A stretch of 64,000 nucleotides of DNA, from NCBI GenBank assembly GCA_002269645.1, contig NIVC01002758.1, positions 62,001 through 126,000 of the forward strand, in the 5' to 3' direction. Both the position numbers and the translations under genes were made by a program. Below, in pieces: positions 4,558 to 62,780 of this stretch. The notes under the pieces are model-generated. The model searched no databases and was not told where the DNA came from. It saw nothing but the letters and a program-made list of their open reading frames with translations. Origin of the DNA: Macrostomum lignano. Its lineage: Eukaryota. Position 1 is the stretch's first letter, and every line of letters starts with the position of its first letter.

Positions 4558-6237
4558 TCAGAGTTCTTGCTCATCCCAGGACCATCCCGTCCGCTTGGAT
4601 ATTTGAGCACCAACTGCTGCTGGTTGAAACTTCTTTGGCTGCAATGCCGCATACCGCCAATTGTCAGTCTGCATCTCCGGCAGAGGTTGCTGCTTTTGAA
4701 GCTCACCAGCTCTAGCTGTGTTGTCTTGTTTGCCTGATGCTAATCTTGGCTGCCAATGATTTACACCGTCGAGTTTCTGGTCCTTGCTAGCTGATGCTTG
4801 AATCCCAGCTGGTAGTTGGTCAGGTGTTGCTTGTCGCTGATACAGAGGCGACTGTACTGGTTCTGGCTGACTCCAGTGATGCGACCTGTAGATGAATTGG
4901 TACAAGTGTCTTGTTTACTCTTGGAATGGCTCAACATTTCTTCTTTTGCATCCAACTTTCACTATAACCATTCTTCACGCAAATTATGTTAAAAAATTAA
5001 ATATTAACGACCTTGCTGCATTCTGGCGTCTTTAAAACATCCTGTATGTGGATATTACAAACGTATAATAAGGAAATCGTTTAAAAAGATAGTAACTTTG
5101 AGTTCCTACTTTTAACAGGTTTGAATTTTGAAGCTGTGAAAGCGACTTTTTGGCATCAAGCAAATAAATAAAGCAATGATCTTCCTATGTAGGAGTCCCT
5201 CGTTCCAAGATTGATTATAAAACTTCTGCATAGAAATACAATCTTGTATACAAAGCCTGCCAGCATACTTTGATGATGACTCCTGTTGCAATTTAAGTTG
5301 TTCAAGTTGCTCGCCCAGACGACGAACGCTGTCCTCCATACGTTTGAGACTTCTCGATACTGCGCGCTCTTTTGTTCTCCAGCCTTCGTCATCAGTTAGT
5401 TGATCTAAGTTGACGCGCTGAGTAGAGTGGTCGATTGGCACAAGTGACACCGTAGCCCGGTGATGTTGCGTCTGGTACTGGTAGCCATTTCCTTCGTACG
5501 TGTAGCCTCCGCCTGTTTGAGCTAGCCTCTTGAGTCGATTGGCTAGATTGATCTGAGCACAGCAACGACAGCCAGAGCTGCTCATAGTGTAGCTTGTGTT
5601 TTGATGTCGCTTCTGCTGCTTATTCTTCTGCGGCTGAAGATATTCGGATATCAGTTTGTTAACTCGATCGTTTTCCATTATTGCTGAATTGGATCTGTGG
5701 CTATGCTCCGGTGTCAGGCGTTCCGTAGTACTGATTGGCTGAAAGATAGGGGTCGTGCATCGTACATAGTTGCGCACAAGTCGTAGCATGATTTCCAAAT
5801 ATTCTTACCTTTGTTAATTCGCCCTTGTTTTCACTTGTATCGGTAACGATTTGGCTTATACTATCTAGCCTTTCGATCGTCTCTTCCAAGCCTTTGGCTT
5901 TATCTATCGCTCGTCGCTCCGAATCCTTTAAGCCTATTTCAAACGTGACTGTCTTTTGCATGTCCATTTTAACTGGAAAGAGATTGCTATCGAAGATAAG
6001 GTCGATTGCTCTATTAAAAGTTTGCTCTAAGCAGTTTTTGTCACGGCTAACTAGAGCGCGTTCGTCTCTGCTTTGCTGCTTTGCAAAACTGCTTTGCTGC
6101 GTTCGTTGCCTTGTCACTTCTTGCTGTTTATAGCTGTACTGGAAAGTGTCCTTTGTACTTTTCCTTCCTCTGAGCCATTCATCCATCCAGTTCCATGCTT
6201 TACAGGGAACAACCAAAGTGCAGTGCAGTACTTCCAT
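4558..6237 (-). CDS. Uncharacterised ~408-aa protein, 3 exons (6237-5809, 5738-5269, 4885-4558)
   Basis: Three overlapping ORFs join in phase through GT-AG introns: AAG|GTAAGA...TTTCAG|CCA (phase 0) and AA|GTATGC...CTACAG|G (phase 2). A predicted coiled coil is present (RSLKRMEDSVRRLGEQLEQLK). No family recognised. Confidence 0.55.
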
Positions 6238-6673: not shown

Positions 6674-7144
6674 ATGTCGCAGCCAAGTTCAGCGGTCATT
6701 GTGGAAGGCGAGGCGCCAGAATCGGACGATGAAGAGCAGCAGCTGACTGACTCGCCATCCTCCGATGTCAGTTCAAAGAAATCGACTGCTCCAACTGTTG
6801 CAAAAGACGCCATAGCAACAGAGCACGGGGCGCAGTCTCGGCTGCAGCAGCAGCAGCAGCAAAAGACTAGCCAGCAGGAGCAGCAGCGTCGCTACGCTAG
6901 CAGCGCGTTGCACGCCAGATTTTTTCAAGACGCCGGCAAACTGCAATCCGCGCTGGTTGCTAGGCGAGCGTCAACCTACGAGGCGGCTACTAAAGAGCTG
7001 CGCGGAGTTGCTAGCCAATTAGCTAAGACGCACGCGTGCATTCAGGATGCCTCGCATGCGCTTCGGCTGACTACTAATGATCTGTACAAACTTGACGACC
7101 GGCTGCAAGCCCTGACTAAGACTGACTGGCTGGCTGGCTTGTGA
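6674..7144 (+). CDS. BLOC1S3: BLOC-1 subunit 3 (single exon, 156 aa)
   Basis: N-terminal V.GEA.ESD.E motif (IVEGEAPESDDEE) and a C-terminal helical region (LHARFFQ...LRLTTNDLYKLDDRL) resemble BLOC1S3. Confidence 0.75.
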   Translation: MSQPSSAVIVEGEAPESDDEEQQLTDSPSSDVSSKKSTAPTVAKDAIATEHGAQSRLQQQQQQKTSQQEQQRRYASSALHARFFQDAGKLQSALVARRASTYEAATKELRGVASQLAKTHACIQDASHALRLTTNDLYKLDDRLQALTKTDWLAGL

Positions 7145-7469
7145 ACGGCTATATTAAACTGATAGTTTTCACACTTTGCTACCAATTACTGGCAAAACTT
7201 TCACTAACTCGTTAGATCATACATTGTTCAGTCGGTTTTTTAGTGCTTTCCAATACTATATGTGTACTATATGTAAACTTTATGATTTTTGATAGATTGT
7301 CTGTCTCGTTAAAGTATATGATTATTTTTTGTATATAATTAAACCTATTTATGATTTTCAATATCTAAAAACTGAAATTAGAAAGTGTTCGATTTGATTT
7401 TAAGAAAATTTCAGGTGGATCCTATAATTTATGGAGGCTATATTTAATCCTAGCAATAATTAGACTGAG

Positions 7470-8390
7470 GAATAGATCAGCTACCCAACAACAGACTAGG
7501 GGATAGAGCGACTCCCTAGCAATAGACTGAGGGATAGAGAGGCCCCCTCTACAACAGACTGGGGGTAGAGAGGCCCCTCTACAACAGACTGGGGGTAGAG
7601 AGGCCTCTCTACAACAGACTGGGGGTAGAGAGGCAGGCCCCTCTACAACAGACTGGGGGTAGAGAGGCCTCTCTACAACTGACTGGGGGTAGAGAGGCCC
7701 CTCTACAACAGACTGGGGGGTAGAGAGGCCCCTCTACAACAGACTGGGGGTAGAGAGGCCCCTCAACAACAGACTGGGGGGTAGAGAGGCCCCTCTACAA
7801 CAGGCTGGGGGTAGAGAGGCCCCTCTAGACCAGACTGGGGATAGAGAGGCCCCCTCTATAATGGATAGAGAGGCCCCCTCTAGACCAGACTGGGGATAGA
7901 GAGGCTCCCTCTATAATGGATAGAGAGGCCCCCTCTAGACCAGACTGGGGATAGAGAGGCCCCCTCTATAATGGATAGAGAGGCCCCCTCTATAATGGAT
8001 AGAGAGGCCCCCTCTACAACAGACTGGGGGGTAGAGAGGCCCCCTCTAGACCAGACTGGGGATAGAGAGGCCCCCTCTATAATGGATAGAGAGGCCCCCT
8101 CTATAATGGATAGAGAGGCCCCCTCTATAATGGATAGAGAGGCCTCCTCTATAATGGATAGAGAGGCCCCCTCTACAACAGACTGGGGGGTAGAGAGGCC
8201 CCTCTACAACGGACTGGGGGTAGAGAGGCCCCTCTACAACAGGCTGGGGGATAGAGAGGCCCCTCTACAACTGGCTGGGGGATAGAGGCCCCTCAACAAC
8301 AGGCTGGGGGATAAAGGGCCCCTCAACAACAGACTGGGGGGGTAGAGAGACCCCCTCAACAACAGGCTGGGGATAGAGCGGCTACCCAAC
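7470..8390. repeat. Composite minisatellite (~30-bp GAGAGGCCCCTCTACAACAGACTGGGGGTA and 24-bp ATGGATAGAGAGGCCCCCTCTATA units)
   Basis: Tandem units seen directly; they explain the spurious ORF 7971-8285. Confidence 0.93.
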
Positions 8391-8446
8391 AACATATTTT
8401 CAAGTTATTGAAATTGCAACTTCATTAACCCCATGGATTTCTTCAG

Positions 8447-11400
8447 TTGTCCAAAGCCACAGCTCGATTTGGTAGCAGCCTTGCCGCTACCGCGCGCTCA
8501 GTTGCTGGTCATAGACTGAGTACCAACTGCTTATTGTTGCGTCAGTCATTTTCGCCGGCGCTTTGTAGGCGATGGGTAGCAACGGAGCCGGCAATTTTCT
8601 CGTCCACCGCAGCGTCAGTTTACACGGTTGCTAGGCGACAGAAACACACAGATTTGCGCCCGCCAAAGCCAACAATTGCTTATCGACTAGTGGCCTCAGC
8701 GCCAGCCGGTCTGCAACCTTACCTGAGACTGGCTCGATTAGATAGGCCTATTGGCACCTGGCTATTGTACCTGCCTTGCGCTTGGAGCATCACCTTGGCA
8801 ACTCCAGCTGGCCTGCTGCCAGATCCGCTTGTGCTGGGCCTATTCGGCTGCGGCGCCCTGCTGATGCGAGGCGCCGGCTGTACTATGAATGACATTTTAG
8901 ATAGGTGAGCCGGACAGAGAGTAGGGGAGGGAGAAGAAAAAGGAGATGAGAGATGAGAGGCGAGATGAGAGGAGGGAGGAGAGGAGAAAAGAAAGGAGAA
9001 AAGCGAAGAATGGAAAGTGGAGAGGAGAGAAGAAAATATAGATAAGAGGATAGAGGAGAGAAGAGAAAAGATAGATAAGAGGAGAGAGGAGAGAAGAGAA
9101 AAGATAGATAAGAGGAGAGAGGAGAGAAGAGAAGAAAGGAGAGAGAGAGATGGGAGGAGAGGGGATAGGAGAGAAGAAAGGAGATGAATGGGATGAGAGA
9201 AGAAAAGAGAGGAAAAGAGAGAGATGAGAGGAGAAGGGAGAGAGGGGAGAGAGAAGAGAGAGAGATAGAGCTGAGAAGAGAAGCGGGATTAGTATTGGGA
9301 AGTTTCAAGAACCCAAAAGGGTTGCATAGTGAGGCTTTGCGGCCGCATGCTGTAACATTGCTGCTATTAGTATTGGCCAGTGCTGAACAACTAAGGTTGG
9401 GACACTTAACCAAAGCATGCTACTAATAGTATTGAAAATTGAATGTCTCTCCTACTCAGGGATTATGACAAGCGCGTAGAACGCACCGAGGACCGGCCGA
9501 TACCTTCAGGCCAGGTGACTGTGCCCCGAGCTACAGCTTTCCTAATTGGCCAATCGCTGCTGGCCGCTTGCGTTCTGTTTCAATTCGACTGGTTCACCGT
9601 TGGTTTGGGCGTCGCTTCGCTCGGCTTAGTTGCCACTTATCCGCTGTTTAAACGGTTCACTTATTGGCCTCAGGCGGCGTTGGGTATGCCTAATTTATCG
9701 GTTTCATTTCTTCTTAATTATATTCTAATTTATAAAAGAAAGCCCTGGCACTATTGAAAAGTCGCTGCTAGTAAGCTACTTTTCTCGGATCTCCCTTGCA
9801 ACTTGCTCGACTCTGCGTAACCAGAAAATAGGATGAATCAAATGAGGTTTTACCATAGACTCAGGGGTCGGCAAACTTTTTATCTTAATGGCCAGATAAA
9901 GAATCTCGACCATTACTGTGGGCCAGATGAGAAAGGAAAAATGAATAGATAGAGAGAGAAGAGAAATAAAGAAAGTGAGAGATGCGATGAGAGAAGAGGA
10001 GAGGAGAGGAGTAGAGAAAAGAGAGGAGGGGAGAGAGGACTGAGAAGAAAAACAAACTTTGAGCGGGCCAGATTGCTATTGTGAAGTTTCAGAGGACCGA
10101 GGGCGGGCCAGAGTTTGCCGTCCCCCTGCCATAGACAACAGACCATTGCACTACTGCGGTATGGAGTGAGGATCGTTCTTAGTTAGATAAAAGAAGCAAG
10201 GGACTGTGTACACCCTGACATTGTCACACAACCGGCGAGAGGCATTACTGCCCATTCCGCCGACTCCCCCTGAGCAGGCACACAAGCGCACGGATACGTA
10301 CGCAGTCACACGCACAGGCACACGCTCACACAGGAGTGTACAGCGGCCCCTGACTTTATTTATCGTTAGGCATGTACACTTCACTGCGCCTTGGGGTTGG
10401 CCCTCAAGGGCGTTAATTGCACGAGCAGAGCCAAGCCGAGACTCCAATTCAGCCCCAAATTAATGTGACTGCACTTGGAATCGAGCCTGGGCCGCTGACA
10501 CGTCAGAGCGCCGCGCTAGACCGCTGGGTAGATCAAGGAAACAAAAAAATAGCAAGGCCTGTCATTAACTAAAGTTCACTAAATAGTTGAACTTCTGCTG
10601 CTGTAGTGCGATGAAACCTCACTGCTAGGTGTCTATCTAGTACTTATCTCCAAAAAACTACCTTGCGCGTCACAGGAATTACACTCAACTTCGGCATTCT
10701 GATTGGTTACTCAGCTATTCAAGCTCACTGTGATTGGCCAGTAGTGTTGCCACTGTACGGAGCGGCTATCCTGTGGACTATGATTTATGACACAATATAT
10801 TCGCATCAAGTATGAATTTATAATATTGTACACAATACTTAACAACCTTATCTACGAGTGCCTCTGTTGTGTGCGTTTTTTTCTAGAGTTATTTTAACTC
10901 CCAATAGGACACCTACAGTTGCGTTTAGTTCCTAGCTGCATAGCAACTAGATTTAGTTATTGTTGTATCCTGTTGTTTAACACTGTCAAGCCAGTTACCA
11001 TGGGCCATTGTGGGACACTTTTGTTTCTTAGGAAACTTTTGAAGGCTGTGTTCTATATTCCATGCAAGTTGATTCTCATATCGTTGGATTTTCTGCCAAA
11101 ATTTTCTAACGGAGAAGCAAAAAAAACTATAAATATTCTACATAGTCTACTATTGTGGTGAAGACCTCAGTAGGCAAGCATCGCATTTTAATGATATAAT
11201 ATATAATTGTCGATAGGTTGTAGCTTAACGGTTAGAGCGTCTAACTTCTGACTGAAAAGTCAGAGGTTCGATTCTCGACCCACTCGAAACAATTTGTGTC
11301 GTTTAACTCTGCATTGCTTCAGTTCACCCAGCTGTAAAATGGGTGCCAGCATTAGCTGGGGTAATTGAGGGTGTGTCAAAAGCCCCTGTATGTTATATCT

Positions 11401-12880
11401 TTGAAGAATATTTTTCAAGAATCTCTGGAACAACACAAGCCTTTAAGAAGTTTTCTAATAAAATGTAGTGTCCCACTCTGTACTTCTACTTGTAGTACTC
11501 GTAGTTCTTAAAATGCTTGCGCGCGCTGTCTGCCGTGTGTTCACTTATCTAGACGCACAAAAACTTTAAGATTGCTAAATATCTACTTACAGTAATCAAC
11601 AAAGTAGTTGTCTTGCATTTTGAAATTAAACATCTATATGAAATATGACAGCTATTCCTTACTTAGTAGCAGCATCGAGTATTTAATTAGTTTTTCTTCG
11701 CTTTTCTGTGGCGCTCCAGCTCCCAGTTCTGTCACCTGTTGTGTGGAGCGATCAGGCTTTCATATTCTATTTGGATAGCTTCTCTCTGGATATCACAGTG
11801 AGCTGAGTAGCCTCCAATCTCTGAAATGAGCTTGAGAATTAACTATAATAATGGAACTGCATTTAGTCACAGTATCGTTCGGCATAAACATGTTTTTTTA
11901 TTCAAGAACATTTTCAACTCTTTCACAGGGTTCACATTTAACTATGGGGCTCTGCTAGGCTATGCAGCACTAACTGGCACTATCGACTTGTCCGTTTGCC
12001 TGCCCCTGTATGCTGCTGGCTTTTGCTGGACAATGGTATATGACACCATCTATGCTCACCAGGTGACCGAACTGGGAAACGGGAGATATCTACTTTATCC
12101 AGTTATTGTTTTATATTATACTAATCATTTTATGTTATTATCTTATTTTTTGCAAATTATATTAAATTTAAAGCTTTATTTTTCACATTTTCTACTTAGA
12201 GTAGGCTATTTAGCTTTGGAAACATTGATTTCACAAAAAAATCAATATAGGAATGGCACTATGCTTGTGCGTATAATGGATTACACTAATTACAAAGGAA
12301 TATTATAGTTGTGTTGTATTTATTGTTTTATTTTAATTTGCAGCTGTTTAATTATGATTTATCACCAGGCTTTGTTGCGCATGAGGTGGCTTGTAACGCA
12401 CGTTTTTAACGCTCCTTTTTAAAAACCGAAAATGCTTATCTCGCTTTTCATCTTACTAACAGTAGTTTTAACTACCGAAATAAACTTTGTACTTTAATTT
12501 TTATTGTGCTATGTAAATTGTAGGACAAGGAGGACGATCTCATGGTTGGTGTTAAGTCGACCGCTTTGCTGTTTGGCGACGCAACAAAGTCCTGGCTGAC
12601 CGGCTTCACTCTGGGCATGTCGCTGCTTCTGGCCACGGCTGGCGCCAACGCAAACTGCGGCCTGTTTTATCACGCCGGTGCGCTGTACGCCTCGCTGCAC
12701 CTTGCCCAGCAGGTGGCCAGCGTTCAGTTGGACAATCCGGCCGACTGCTTGGCCAAATTCAAGTCCAATAGGAATCTGGGATTGGCCTTCTGGCTGGCTA
12801 TCGTGCTGGACAACTTCTTTGGCCTGCCCGTGCCCGGCTTTGGGGGCGGCTTTGAGGAGTCTCTGTTTGCTGAGGACTGA
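8447..12880 (+). CDS. COQ2: 4-hydroxybenzoate polyprenyltransferase COQ2; exons 8447-8904, 9460-9683, [10676-10809 OR 11929-12062], 12524-12880 (~391 aa)
   Basis: UbiA-family motifs: [54 protein letters not shown](A/S)HQDKEDD..GVKSTAL.FG. All splice phases are consistent. There is an Arg/Ser/Ala-rich presequence but no genomic ATG in front of it. Confidence 0.95.
8910..9285. repeat. Purine-rich (GA/GGAGA) low-complexity tract in COQ2 intron 1
   Basis: Seen directly in the sequence. Confidence 0.85.
9861..10128. mobile_element. hAT (Charlie-like) MITE in COQ2 intron 2
   Basis: Imperfect TIRs TCAGGGGTCGGCAAACT / AGTTTGCCGTCCCCCTG flanked by a perfect 8-bp TSD CCATAGAC (9853-9860 and 10129-10136). 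Confidence 0.8.
10150..10530 (-). mobile_element. tRNA-derived SINE (family B)
   Basis: On the minus strand the head reads AGCGGTCTAGCGCGGCGCTCTGAC...CCCAGGCTCGATTCC (A/B-box-like). The downstream motif is shared with the copy at ~1745. Confidence 0.5.
10676..10809 (+). CDS. COQ2: COQ2 mutually exclusive exon, rhodoquinone (coq-2e)-type: (G)[44 protein letters not shown]
   Basis: CACAG|GA acceptor and CAA|GTATGA donor, 134 nt, open in the COQ2 phase. Homologous to 11929-12062, with Leu in T-L-N and Ser in IY-S-HQ. Not in the ORF track. Confidence 0.88.
11212..11385 (+). mobile_element. tRNA-headed SINE with CORE-like domain (family A), copy 1
   Basis: tRNA-like head (TAGCTTAACGGTTAGAGCG...GGTTCGATTC) plus TTAACTCTGCATTGCTTCAGTTCACCCAGCTGTAAAATGGGTGCCAGCATTAGCTGGGGTA, which is identical in the copy at 43568. 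Confidence 0.8.
11929..12062 (+). CDS. COQ2: COQ2 mutually exclusive exon, ubiquinone (coq-2a)-type: (G)[44 protein letters not shown]
   Basis: TTTCACAG|GG acceptor and CAG|GTGACC donor, 134 nt. Phe in T-F-N and Ala in IY-A-HQ, as in vertebrate COQ2. Confidence 0.92.
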
Positions 12881-13254
12881 CTGTGTCTGTCTGTATTTTC
12901 AAGGCTTTCGCTAGATCGAGTTTTGTTATAGCTTAGAATTGGCTCTTATTAAATTTTGAGCTTTTTAGCATTTTCGATTCTATGTTTGGTAATGTAATTG
13001 CAACTATGTTGTGTGACTTTTATCCTCGTATGATGCACAATACTGTTAAAGCAAACGTGTTCATTTTAGATGTACCATCACATGGTTAAATGCATCTTTT
13101 ATATCGTTTTTTAAGCAAGTTAATGTTAGATTTTAGACGAAAAAAATTCAGCTGTAGCTAAAATGATTGAGAAGTTATTTTCCAATCTTCGAGTTATTTA
13201 GAAGCATATTTATTTATCGATATATATGCTTTTTTATCCTTTAGCGCAACCGCA

Positions 13255-13630
13255 TCACTCCGCCACTGTCCTGGAGGCTGTACATTGGCGCACCCACCTC
13301 ACTCCGCGACTCTGTCCCCTGGGCTGCACAATAGCGCATCCACCTCACTCCGCGACTCTGTCCCCTAGGCGGCACAATAGCGCACCCACCTAACTCCGCC
13401 ACTGCCCCGTGGGCTGTTCATTTGCGCACCCACCTCACTCCGCGACTGTCCCCATGGGCTGCACAATAGCGCACCCACCTCACTCCGCGACTCTGTCCCC
13501 TGGGCTGCACAATAGCGCACCCACCTCACTCCGCGACTCTGTCCCCTGGGCTGTTCATTTGCGCCCCACCTCACTCCGCCACTGCCCCTGGGCTGTTCAT
13601 TTGCGCCCCACCTCACTCCGCCACCCTGTC
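13255..13630. repeat. ~46-bp minisatellite with CCCACCTCACTCCGC core
   Basis: Tandem units; the same core recurs at 22620-22960 and 23745-24175. Confidence 0.9.
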
Positions 13631-13932
13631 TCCTAGGCTTTAGGTTGGTAAAGCTCACCTTTTTTGCCTAAATCATTCGTCTAATCGTCTCCTACATTTA
13701 AATAATTTTTGCTTTCATGAAAATTACTGTTGCAAACAAAGCAAACCAGATCAATAAAGTTCAGACGCTGTCATGCAACAGCTAGACAAGGAAACATCTG
13801 CTGCTCTTGCTACTACTAGCAGTAGTGCCACCTCGACGGCAACAGCGGCCGCTTCATGACTGTTCGATCCAGTGCCAACTCCGGCTGCTAGTCTAACTTA
13901 ATTGCAGTTTAATAGCTGATCGGATTAGCGCG

Positions 13933-48317
<34,385 letters not shown>

Positions 48318-61891: not shown

Positions 61892-62780
61892 ATTTAAGAG
61901 TGATTAGATGTCTGCATCATGATACGTTTTTAAATACGAACTACTACTCATATATCATATGCTTCTCAAAGACGCTGGATATCAAAGTCCATTCATCATA
62001 AATTTCTTAGTTTTTAGTTTTTCCGACTTTTTGCGCTGTCTTTTCTAATCGTTGTAATTGTTTTGTTAATTTATATACCAAAGCTTCTCTTTACTGCGCT
62101 CGTAGTTTCTTTAAAAATAAACCATATTTCAGCTTTTTGTGTTCCATTTTATGCGGTTATTTTGTTCTGATTTAATGCCGCGCATTCAAAAGATATACTA
62201 CATGAAGTCACCCTCGTATTGAATATTTAAATTAAGTTATTTATTTAAAGAATTTTGTTTGTTTTGAGGCCACATTCAGAGGCGAAAATCAAGGAAGTAT
62301 CGCGAAATTTAGGCCGAAAAACTCGACTTCGAATCGACGTCGAATCACCGGGACATCATTCGACGTCGATTCGGCTTAAAATTTTCGAAGTCGATTCGAC
62401 GTCGATTTTTACACCGGGATCAAATGTGAGTTCGAATTAGACTCATATTAAAATGAATATGACAGTAAAAAACAGCTAAATTTCTAGATAATACCGGAGT
62501 ACGCCGGGTGTCGAAAACAGAGCGGAAAATCTGGCCGTCACAAGGTCAGAGCAGCTCTATTGAACAGCTTTGAGTACAATTTGAGTTGGTTTCACCTTGA
62601 CCTGGCTGCTTGGCCACGCGCATAAATTCCGGACCATGAAAGACATATACATGTAGCAAACCAGTCAGCAAAATAGCTGTAAATAAAAAGCTAAAAATAG
62701 CGCCTAAAAATTCTCCGAGATAGGCAAGCAGGTGATGATATCAAATTTGATTTCACCGCTTTTATTGTTCAAGATCATTT

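Follow-up and report, generated by a model that had tools for sequence, protein, structure and literature searches.

Spliced-Leader Start Codons in Flatworms

In flatworms, the AUG that closes the spliced leader (SL) is used as a translation initiator, and according to the summary given in PMC9851317 more than 40 Schistosoma mansoni cDNAs depend on it (Cheng et al., 2006). All reported flatworm leaders end in AUG, and the initiator role is repeated in later papers. Macrostomum lignano has a single leader of 35 nucleotides (nt), CGGTCTCTTACTGCGAAGACTCAATTTATTGCATG, which also ends in ATG; about 30% of its genes are trans-spliced, and the top trans-acceptor motif is [T/C]TNCAG (PMC8629364). The Macrostomum leader likely carries its final ATG as a start codon (PMC10468722). 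Here we analyze a 64,000-nt stretch of the M. lignano genome (scaffold NIVC01002758.1 of assembly GCA_002269645.1, Mlig_3_7; positions 62,001 to 126,000 of the forward strand), hereafter the window, in which the gene for the quinone-biosynthesis enzyme COQ2 is without a usable genomic start codon; the AUG of the leader RNA is the most likely source of one. Coordinates refer to the window, and features lie on its plus strand unless stated otherwise.

The locus shares with the flatworm mRNAs of Cheng et al. (2006), as these are summarized in later work, a leader that ends in AUG and a recipient open reading frame (ORF) that brings no AUG itself and continues the frame set at the proposed junction. 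Unlike those mRNAs, it belongs to a free-living macrostomorph, the recipient is COQ2, and the case is proposed here from genome sequence.

A COQ2 Gene Without a Usable Genomic Start Codon

Translation of the exons, with a Met added at the proposed junction, gives a predicted product of 391 amino acids (aa). It matches TIGR01474 (4-hydroxybenzoate octaprenyltransferase, an equivalog model) with 361.9 bits against a cut-off of 275.45, and the match runs from residue 90 to 370 and covers the whole model (positions 1–281 of 282). The Pfam family UbiA (PF01040) is matched with 190.7 bits at residues 109–356. The named top matches are animal mitochondrial COQ2 proteins, and the best protein match is PAA57658.1 (hypothetical protein BOX15_Mlig002721g3, partial). 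On the strength of these matches, the window gene is a genuine COQ2, that is, a 4-hydroxybenzoate polyprenyltransferase of the UbiA superfamily. Exon 1 (8447–8904, with the donor AG/GTGAGC at 8904/8905) is followed by exon 2 (9460–9683), by one of two alternative third exons described below, and by a last exon (12524–12880) that ends in the stop codon TGA at 12878–12880; all exons and splice sites of this copy are intact.

COQ2 forms part of a cluster, together with a CS-domain gene and BLOC1S3, that is present in three paralogous copies: the window, L001 (contig NIVC01002460.1) and L004 (contig NIVC01000309.1). A large SMG1-like gene comes next in the cluster in at least the window and L001.

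The absence of a genomic start codon can be read directly from the sequence. Upstream, the COQ2 frame is closed by an in-frame TAA (8426–8428, conserved in all three paralogs), and the open frame begins with TTG at 8447. The earliest in-frame ATG (8864–8866) is codon 140 counted from 8447, or Met141 of the leader-initiated product, and sits about 50 TIGR01474 positions inside the conserved prenyltransferase core. Another ATG, at 8433–8435, is in a different frame and opens an ORF of 28 codons that is closed by TGA at 8517–8519 (8433–8519 as a whole). The original prediction had named the closing TAA, had placed the first in-frame ATG at codon 140 within the UbiA domain, and had described the ATG at 8433 as out of frame and upstream of the acceptor AG; sequence reading and translation confirm each of these points, with TIGR01474 and Pfam in agreement on the second.

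An alignment of the three copies shows that all of them have the in-frame TAA and the ATG in the other frame, and that none has an upstream ATG in frame; the segment 8403–8444, which includes the ATG at 8433, is identical across the three independent contigs. The same stop and the same missing ATG in three contigs exclude an assembly error. More specifically, we rejected an assembly indel that takes the ATG at 8433 out of frame, given the identity of 8403–8444 in the three contigs.

One could suppose that the protein starts at the genomic ATG at 8864, or that this copy, damaged at its 5′ end, yields no working enzyme. That ATG is the sole in-frame genomic one, there are three genomic copies, so that one of them could decay, and GenBank gives the window copy only a 112-aa fragment. 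However, a protein begun at 8864 would be missing about 50 of the 282 TIGR01474 positions together with any N-terminal extension, including a presequence, and the part of exon 1 upstream of 8864 differs among the three copies mainly at synonymous sites. The intact exons and splice sites of the window copy also speak against decay, and we regard this explanation as highly improbable.

Five positions of exon 1 vary among the copies; four of the changes are synonymous and the fifth is a replacement (R33S, in L004). Paralog-specific variants include GCT/GCC at 8486–8488, AGA/AGG at 8514–8516, CGT/AGT at 8540–8542 and I/M in exon 4, and directly after the proposed junction the copies do not differ. 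A hand tally over the whole coding sequence of the window copy and L001 gave about 15 synonymous and 3 non-synonymous differences. As the divergence is mostly synonymous, COQ2 has been under purifying selection.

The Proposed Acceptor at 8446 and a Probable Leader-Donated AUG

An acceptor run, TTTCTTCAG, ends at 8446, directly before the TTG at 8447. The proposed trans-splice acceptor within it, ATTTCTTCAG (8437–8446), has CTTCAG as its last six bases (8441–8446), which fit [T/C]TNCAG, and both the acceptor and its frame are plain from the sequence. Among the 21 AG dinucleotides in 8396–8700, only the one at 8445/8446 both fits this motif and sets the leader ATG in the COQ2 frame. Based on how often the motif occurs in the window, an in-frame [T/C]TNCAG would arise by chance with a probability of about 2.6% in the 7 codon slots after the stop, and of about 28% somewhere in the 88-codon non-conserved N-terminus. 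The 3′ end of the published leader reads TTTATTGCATG. No leader RNA gene or other known RNA was found in the window.

Under the proposed mechanism, COQ2 would be the third cistron of a polycistronic unit, the pre-mRNA of which is resolved by SL trans-splicing after CTTCAG (8441–8446), so that the end of the 35-nt leader, ...UUGCAUG, is joined directly to UUG at 8447. The predicted junction has ...TTGCATG followed by TTGTCCAAAGCCACAG, and across it the leader (...GCATG) and exon 1 would read M-LSKATARF in frame. Trans-splicing at 8446 would also take out the out-of-frame ATG at 8433; the mRNA would present the terminal AUG of the leader before any other, in frame, and this AUG would start the 391-aa protein. 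We infer from these features that splicing uses this AG, that initiation occurs at the leader AUG, and that the N-terminal extension directs the protein to mitochondria.

The extension (residues 2–89, encoded by 8447–8710) precedes the polyprenyltransferase core matched by TIGR01474. Counting the initiator, the first 89 residues would form a basic, Ser/Thr/Ala-rich segment with an acid-free beginning: the first 40 residues after the junction have a computed charge of +5/−0 and consist of 42% Ser/Thr/Ala, and acidic residues begin only at position 48. This composition is typical of mitochondrial presequences, and the segment is presumably one.

The original prediction had described a clean acceptor up to 8446, had assumed an AUG-ending leader on the grounds that flatworm leaders end this way, and had taken the codons after 8446 for a presequence. 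The first two claims stand up: the acceptor is in frame and fits the M. lignano trans-acceptor motif, and the 35-nt leader of this species ends in ATG (PMC8629364). The codons are presequence-like by composition. We consider a leader-donated AUG, with trans-splicing exactly at 8446/8447, to be the best explanation of the locus, and hold it with moderate confidence. The broader claim, that the leader donates the AUG at one or the other of two in-frame acceptors (exon start at 8447, or at 8546 as discussed below), we consider likely.

The Upstream Spacer and a Probable Polycistronic Unit

BLOC1S3, the immediate upstream neighbor of COQ2 on the same strand, is a single-exon coding sequence (CDS) of 156 aa (6674–7144) that matches PF15753 and corresponds exactly to a GenBank-annotated gene on contig NIVC01002758.1, which agrees with the window at all 17,144 overlapping bases. 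It is followed by an A/T-rich 3′ region (7145–7487) with ATTAAA hexamers at 7153–7158 and 7338–7343, and then by a minisatellite with a period of 30/31 nt and about 30 copies (7488–8394), which makes up the bulk of the BLOC1S3–COQ2 spacer. The spacer measures 1302 nt in the window, and 1131 and 716 nt in the other two paralogs; its length varies because of the minisatellite.

An unrecognized, ATG-bearing cis exon might lie in this spacer, within the minisatellite or before it, or else in one of the upstream genes, and be spliced to the acceptor at 8446. Such an acceptor could also serve cis-splicing, as flatworm acceptors are often common to cis- and trans-splicing (PMC12582326), and there are fifteen ATGs in 7145–8446. 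The consensus donor of the species is GT[G/A]AG, however, and GT[GA]AG is absent from the entire BLOC1S3–COQ2 interval of all three copies; without a donor, and with a spacer of variable length, a conserved exon of this kind is unlikely there. The statement of the original prediction that a minisatellite and BLOC1S3 lie upstream, with no convincing ATG-bearing cis exon, is in line with this result. Spacer sequence is used by none of the three gene models. Another possible pointer to an exon further upstream was MLVSS, the N-terminus of model P0245. We dropped it: it is not encoded upstream in any copy, and the model, which fuses both alternative exons, is an ab initio artefact. Overall, a cis-spliced start codon appears very unlikely to us.

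A further cis-splicing candidate, the ATG at 8433 brought into frame by a 74-nt intron (8472–8545), was rejected. GTAGCA, its donor, departs from the consensus; the two public models that cover exon 1 keep the stretch as coding; and the resulting N-terminus would be acidic.

In L001, the CS-domain gene, BLOC1S3 and COQ2 carry the names Mlig002721.g1,.g2 and.g3, and gN naming denotes genes within one transcriptional unit (PMC5730564). The shared name is a matter of record, with the qualification that the Mlig002721 prefix is also given to paralogous units grouped at 95% identity, as with the ‘g6’ of the third contig. The operon criterion applied to this species is that of same-strand neighbors with a repeat-adjusted distance of less than 1 kb (PMC8629364). 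From the BLOC1S3 stop codon to the COQ2 acceptor the distance is 1302 nt, which after subtraction of the 907-nt minisatellite leaves about 395 nt, below the 1-kb threshold. COQ2 is thus probably the third gene of a polycistronic unit composed of the CS-domain gene, BLOC1S3 and COQ2.

Evidence Against the Proposed 8446 Acceptor, and Alternative Start Sites

Several points weigh against the use of 8446 or limit the case for it, and the first comes from the paralogs. The acceptor is CAG in the window and L004 and CTG in L001 (window 8442–8446 corresponds to L001 9960–9964 and to L004 14814–14818), and comparison of the three sequences indicates that the CTG in L001 is the derived state. Yet the L001 ORF is intact and constrained, which means either that this route was lost only recently in L001 or that the AG is not essential. 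Second, the near-full-length GenBank CDS of L001 (PAA57658.1) has its first codon 36 nt beyond the proposed junction, with no AG directly before it. Third, divergence between paralogs is low (2–6% in non-coding sequence), so the point at which coding constraint starts cannot be mapped; we dropped an attempt to locate it in this way for lack of power. Fourth, protein homology searches, including N-terminal ones, returned no M. lignano transcript-derived proteins, from a collection that apparently contains no RNA-seq assemblies of this species, and exact searches with BLOC1S3 and with the 112-aa ORF recovered the GenBank contig alone. A scan of metagenome contigs gave no match to the predicted leader–exon junction and is uninformative.

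The remaining points of this kind concern a second in-frame AG (8544–8545), in the context TTGCGTCAG followed by TCA, which gives an exon start at 8546. The most serious rival explanation is that the leader donates its AUG at this downstream acceptor, yielding a shorter presequence, and that this is either the main site or the site used by L001. The junction would then consist of ...TTGCATG followed by TCATTTTCGCCGG. The AG is in frame, with a frame open for at least 100 codons, and it is kept in all three paralogs, including L001, which is without the upstream AG. A start at 8546 places 56 residues before the core, nearer to the 66–69 of three other animal COQ2 proteins than the 89 that result from 8447, and the N-terminus is still basic (+6/−2 in the first 40 residues). 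On the other side, the AG at 8544–8545 does not fit [T/C]TNCAG, the first acidic residue is reached already at position 15, and two public models, PAA57658.1 (from 8483) and A0A1I8GS08 (from 8438), count sequence upstream of 8546 as coding. On balance, use of this acceptor seems unlikely, although we take it seriously.

Initiation could instead occur at the near-cognate UUG at 8447 (CUG-UUG in L001), or at a CUG at 8516 with A at −3, on an mRNA that is either trans-spliced or unspliced. TTG stands exactly at 8447, the A-to-T change in the L001 acceptor makes an adjoining in-frame CTG, and nematodes offer documented cases of near-cognate initiation on mRNAs that carry a leader (PMC9851317). Against this, the TTG/CTG at 8444–8449 lies in a poor context (pyrimidine at −3, T at +4), and on a leader-bearing mRNA the leader AUG would be met before any near-cognate codon. 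Exclusive non-AUG initiation of a housekeeping enzyme would also be unusual, and we find this alternative distinctly improbable.

The paralogs invite a further speculation, to which we give little credence: the three COQ2 copies may differ in whether they can receive the leader AUG at the presequence junction, L001 having lost the AG, and would then be sub-functionalized, or kept silent at the steps where translation begins and the protein enters mitochondria. Were it true, the need for trans-splicing would give this polyploid flatworm a real point of control over its quinone synthesis, combined with the rhodoquinone/ubiquinone exon switch described below.

Public Gene Models of COQ2

No public model uses a genome-encoded ATG upstream of COQ2, and both models that span exon 1 are without a start codon. 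The first, PAA57658.1 from L001, is the sole near-full-length GenBank CDS; it is 5′-partial and starts AATARSV, corresponding to window position 8483. The second, A0A1I8GS08 in UniRef, derives from the older ML2 assembly, matches L004, and starts FLQLSK, corresponding to the codon at 8438. In GenBank, the window COQ2 is represented only by the 112-aa ORF (12542–12880) in the last exon, and L004 (from 14819 onward) has no COQ2 annotation. The UniRef models from the older assembly consist of one of 1857 aa, fused to the downstream SMG1-like gene, and one of 428 aa that holds both alternative exons.

The start of A0A1I8GS08 may have a simple origin. Under four of five scoring schemes, the alignment of a cDNA that carries the leader would reach back in the genome to 8437, through a chance similarity between ATTTATTGCATG and ATTTCTT-CA-G, and an alignment from 8437 has its first full codon at 8438, where this model starts. 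The start could be the trace of a leader-bearing cDNA; the evidence is circumstantial and amounts to only a hint.

We also considered 5′-partial GenBank starts as general markers of trans-splicing and rejected them. Between the CS-domain gene and BLOC1S3 lies a minus-strand gene (window about 5810–6100; L001 6209–7659; L004 11513–12951), which is 5′-partial in two paralogs and has no annotation in the window contig. In these two paralogs its start points and frames differ, one of the starts falling after an AG; such inconsistency indicates that 5′ ends in this annotation are not precise splice-site markers. The difference in frame is due to a difference in the length of an A-run just upstream of an internal ATG (MDMQKTV...).

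These models illustrate a more general consequence, as annotation pipelines that ignore a leader ATG truncate or miss such genes. For COQ2, Mlig_3_7 has one 5′-partial model, one 112-aa fragment and one copy with no model, which would mislead the counting and knockdown of quinone-biosynthesis genes.

Alternative Exons and Neighboring Features

COQ2 has two mutually exclusive exons of 134 nt, with diagnostic residues 39 positions apart. Exon 3a (10676–10809) is the e-type alternative, with Leu and Ser at the diagnostic positions (ITLN...IYSHQ), and exon 3b (11929–12062) the a-type, pan-eukaryotic alternative, with Phe and Ala (FTFN...IYAHQ). Both are present in the window and in L001; PAA57658.1 uses 3a, and A0A1I8GS08 uses 3b. 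In helminths, molluscs and annelids, a switch between coq-2e and coq-2a exons controls whether rhodoquinone or ubiquinone is made (Tan et al., 2020, PMC7434440). Judged by its sequence, the M. lignano pair is this known switch: it is found in the same gene, as an exclusive 134-nt pair, with the same Phe/Ala vs. Leu/Ser residues 39 positions apart. M. lignano is not among the species listed in PMC7434440, and the exon switch is unrelated to the question of the start codon.

The introns contain other recognizable sequence. Long, purine-only, GA-rich tracts of low complexity occupy 8943–9283 in intron 1 and about 9930–10050 in intron 2. The intron between exons 3a and 3b includes a tRNA-like stretch, ggttgtagcttaacggttagagcg...ggttcgattctcgacc, at about 11215–11290, for which neither ARAGORN nor Rfam gave a call; it may be the remnant of a tRNA-derived repeat.

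Downstream of COQ2, a second minisatellite with a period of 46 nt and about 8 copies (13242–13639) lies in the spacer before the SMG1-like gene, and both spacers of the putative operon are thus repeat-inflated in the manner that PMC8629364 describes for M. lignano operons. The SMG1-like kinase gene encodes 3801 aa with N-terminal ankyrin repeats and has its own ATG at 13933. An acceptor, AATTGCAG (13900–13907), fits the trans-acceptor motif and lies 25 nt before this ATG; a leader spliced at 13907 would place its AUG on an upstream ORF of 4 codons (M-F-N-S-stop).

Comparison With Described Leader-AUG Systems

The present analysis shares with earlier studies of SL trans-splicing and operons in M. 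lignano (PMC5730564, PMC8629364) the same assembly (Mlig_3_7), leader, [T/C]TNCAG motif and gN naming, and the locus resembles the operons of PMC8629364 in its repeat-inflated intergenic spacers. In PMC8629364, the leader ATG is not discussed as a start codon, and the sole passage on AUG or start codons concerns clearance of the 5′ untranslated region; in PMC5730564, the ATG passages found concern an artificial ATG in reporter constructs, and the term “start codon” is absent. No list of M. lignano genes that depend on the leader AUG was found in the literature searched, and Mlig002721 is not mentioned in the searchable papers or supplements.

The COQ2 frame also resembles the slORFs identified with slORFfinder (PMC9851317), in that the ORF would exist only after the leader has been added. 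Those slORFs are from nematodes, ascidians and euglenozoans and mostly use near-cognate codons, whereas in the M. lignano case a canonical AUG would start the main conserved ORF rather than an extra one.

Initiation at a leader AUG has been known in flatworms since 2006 and is a textbook case for the phylum, and our understanding of the mechanism is unchanged by COQ2. The novelty lies in the instance (M. lignano COQ2) and in its consequence for annotation. If confirmed, it would provide a clear case from a free-living flatworm in which both the start codon and the import signal of an essential mitochondrial enzyme exist only after trans-splicing.

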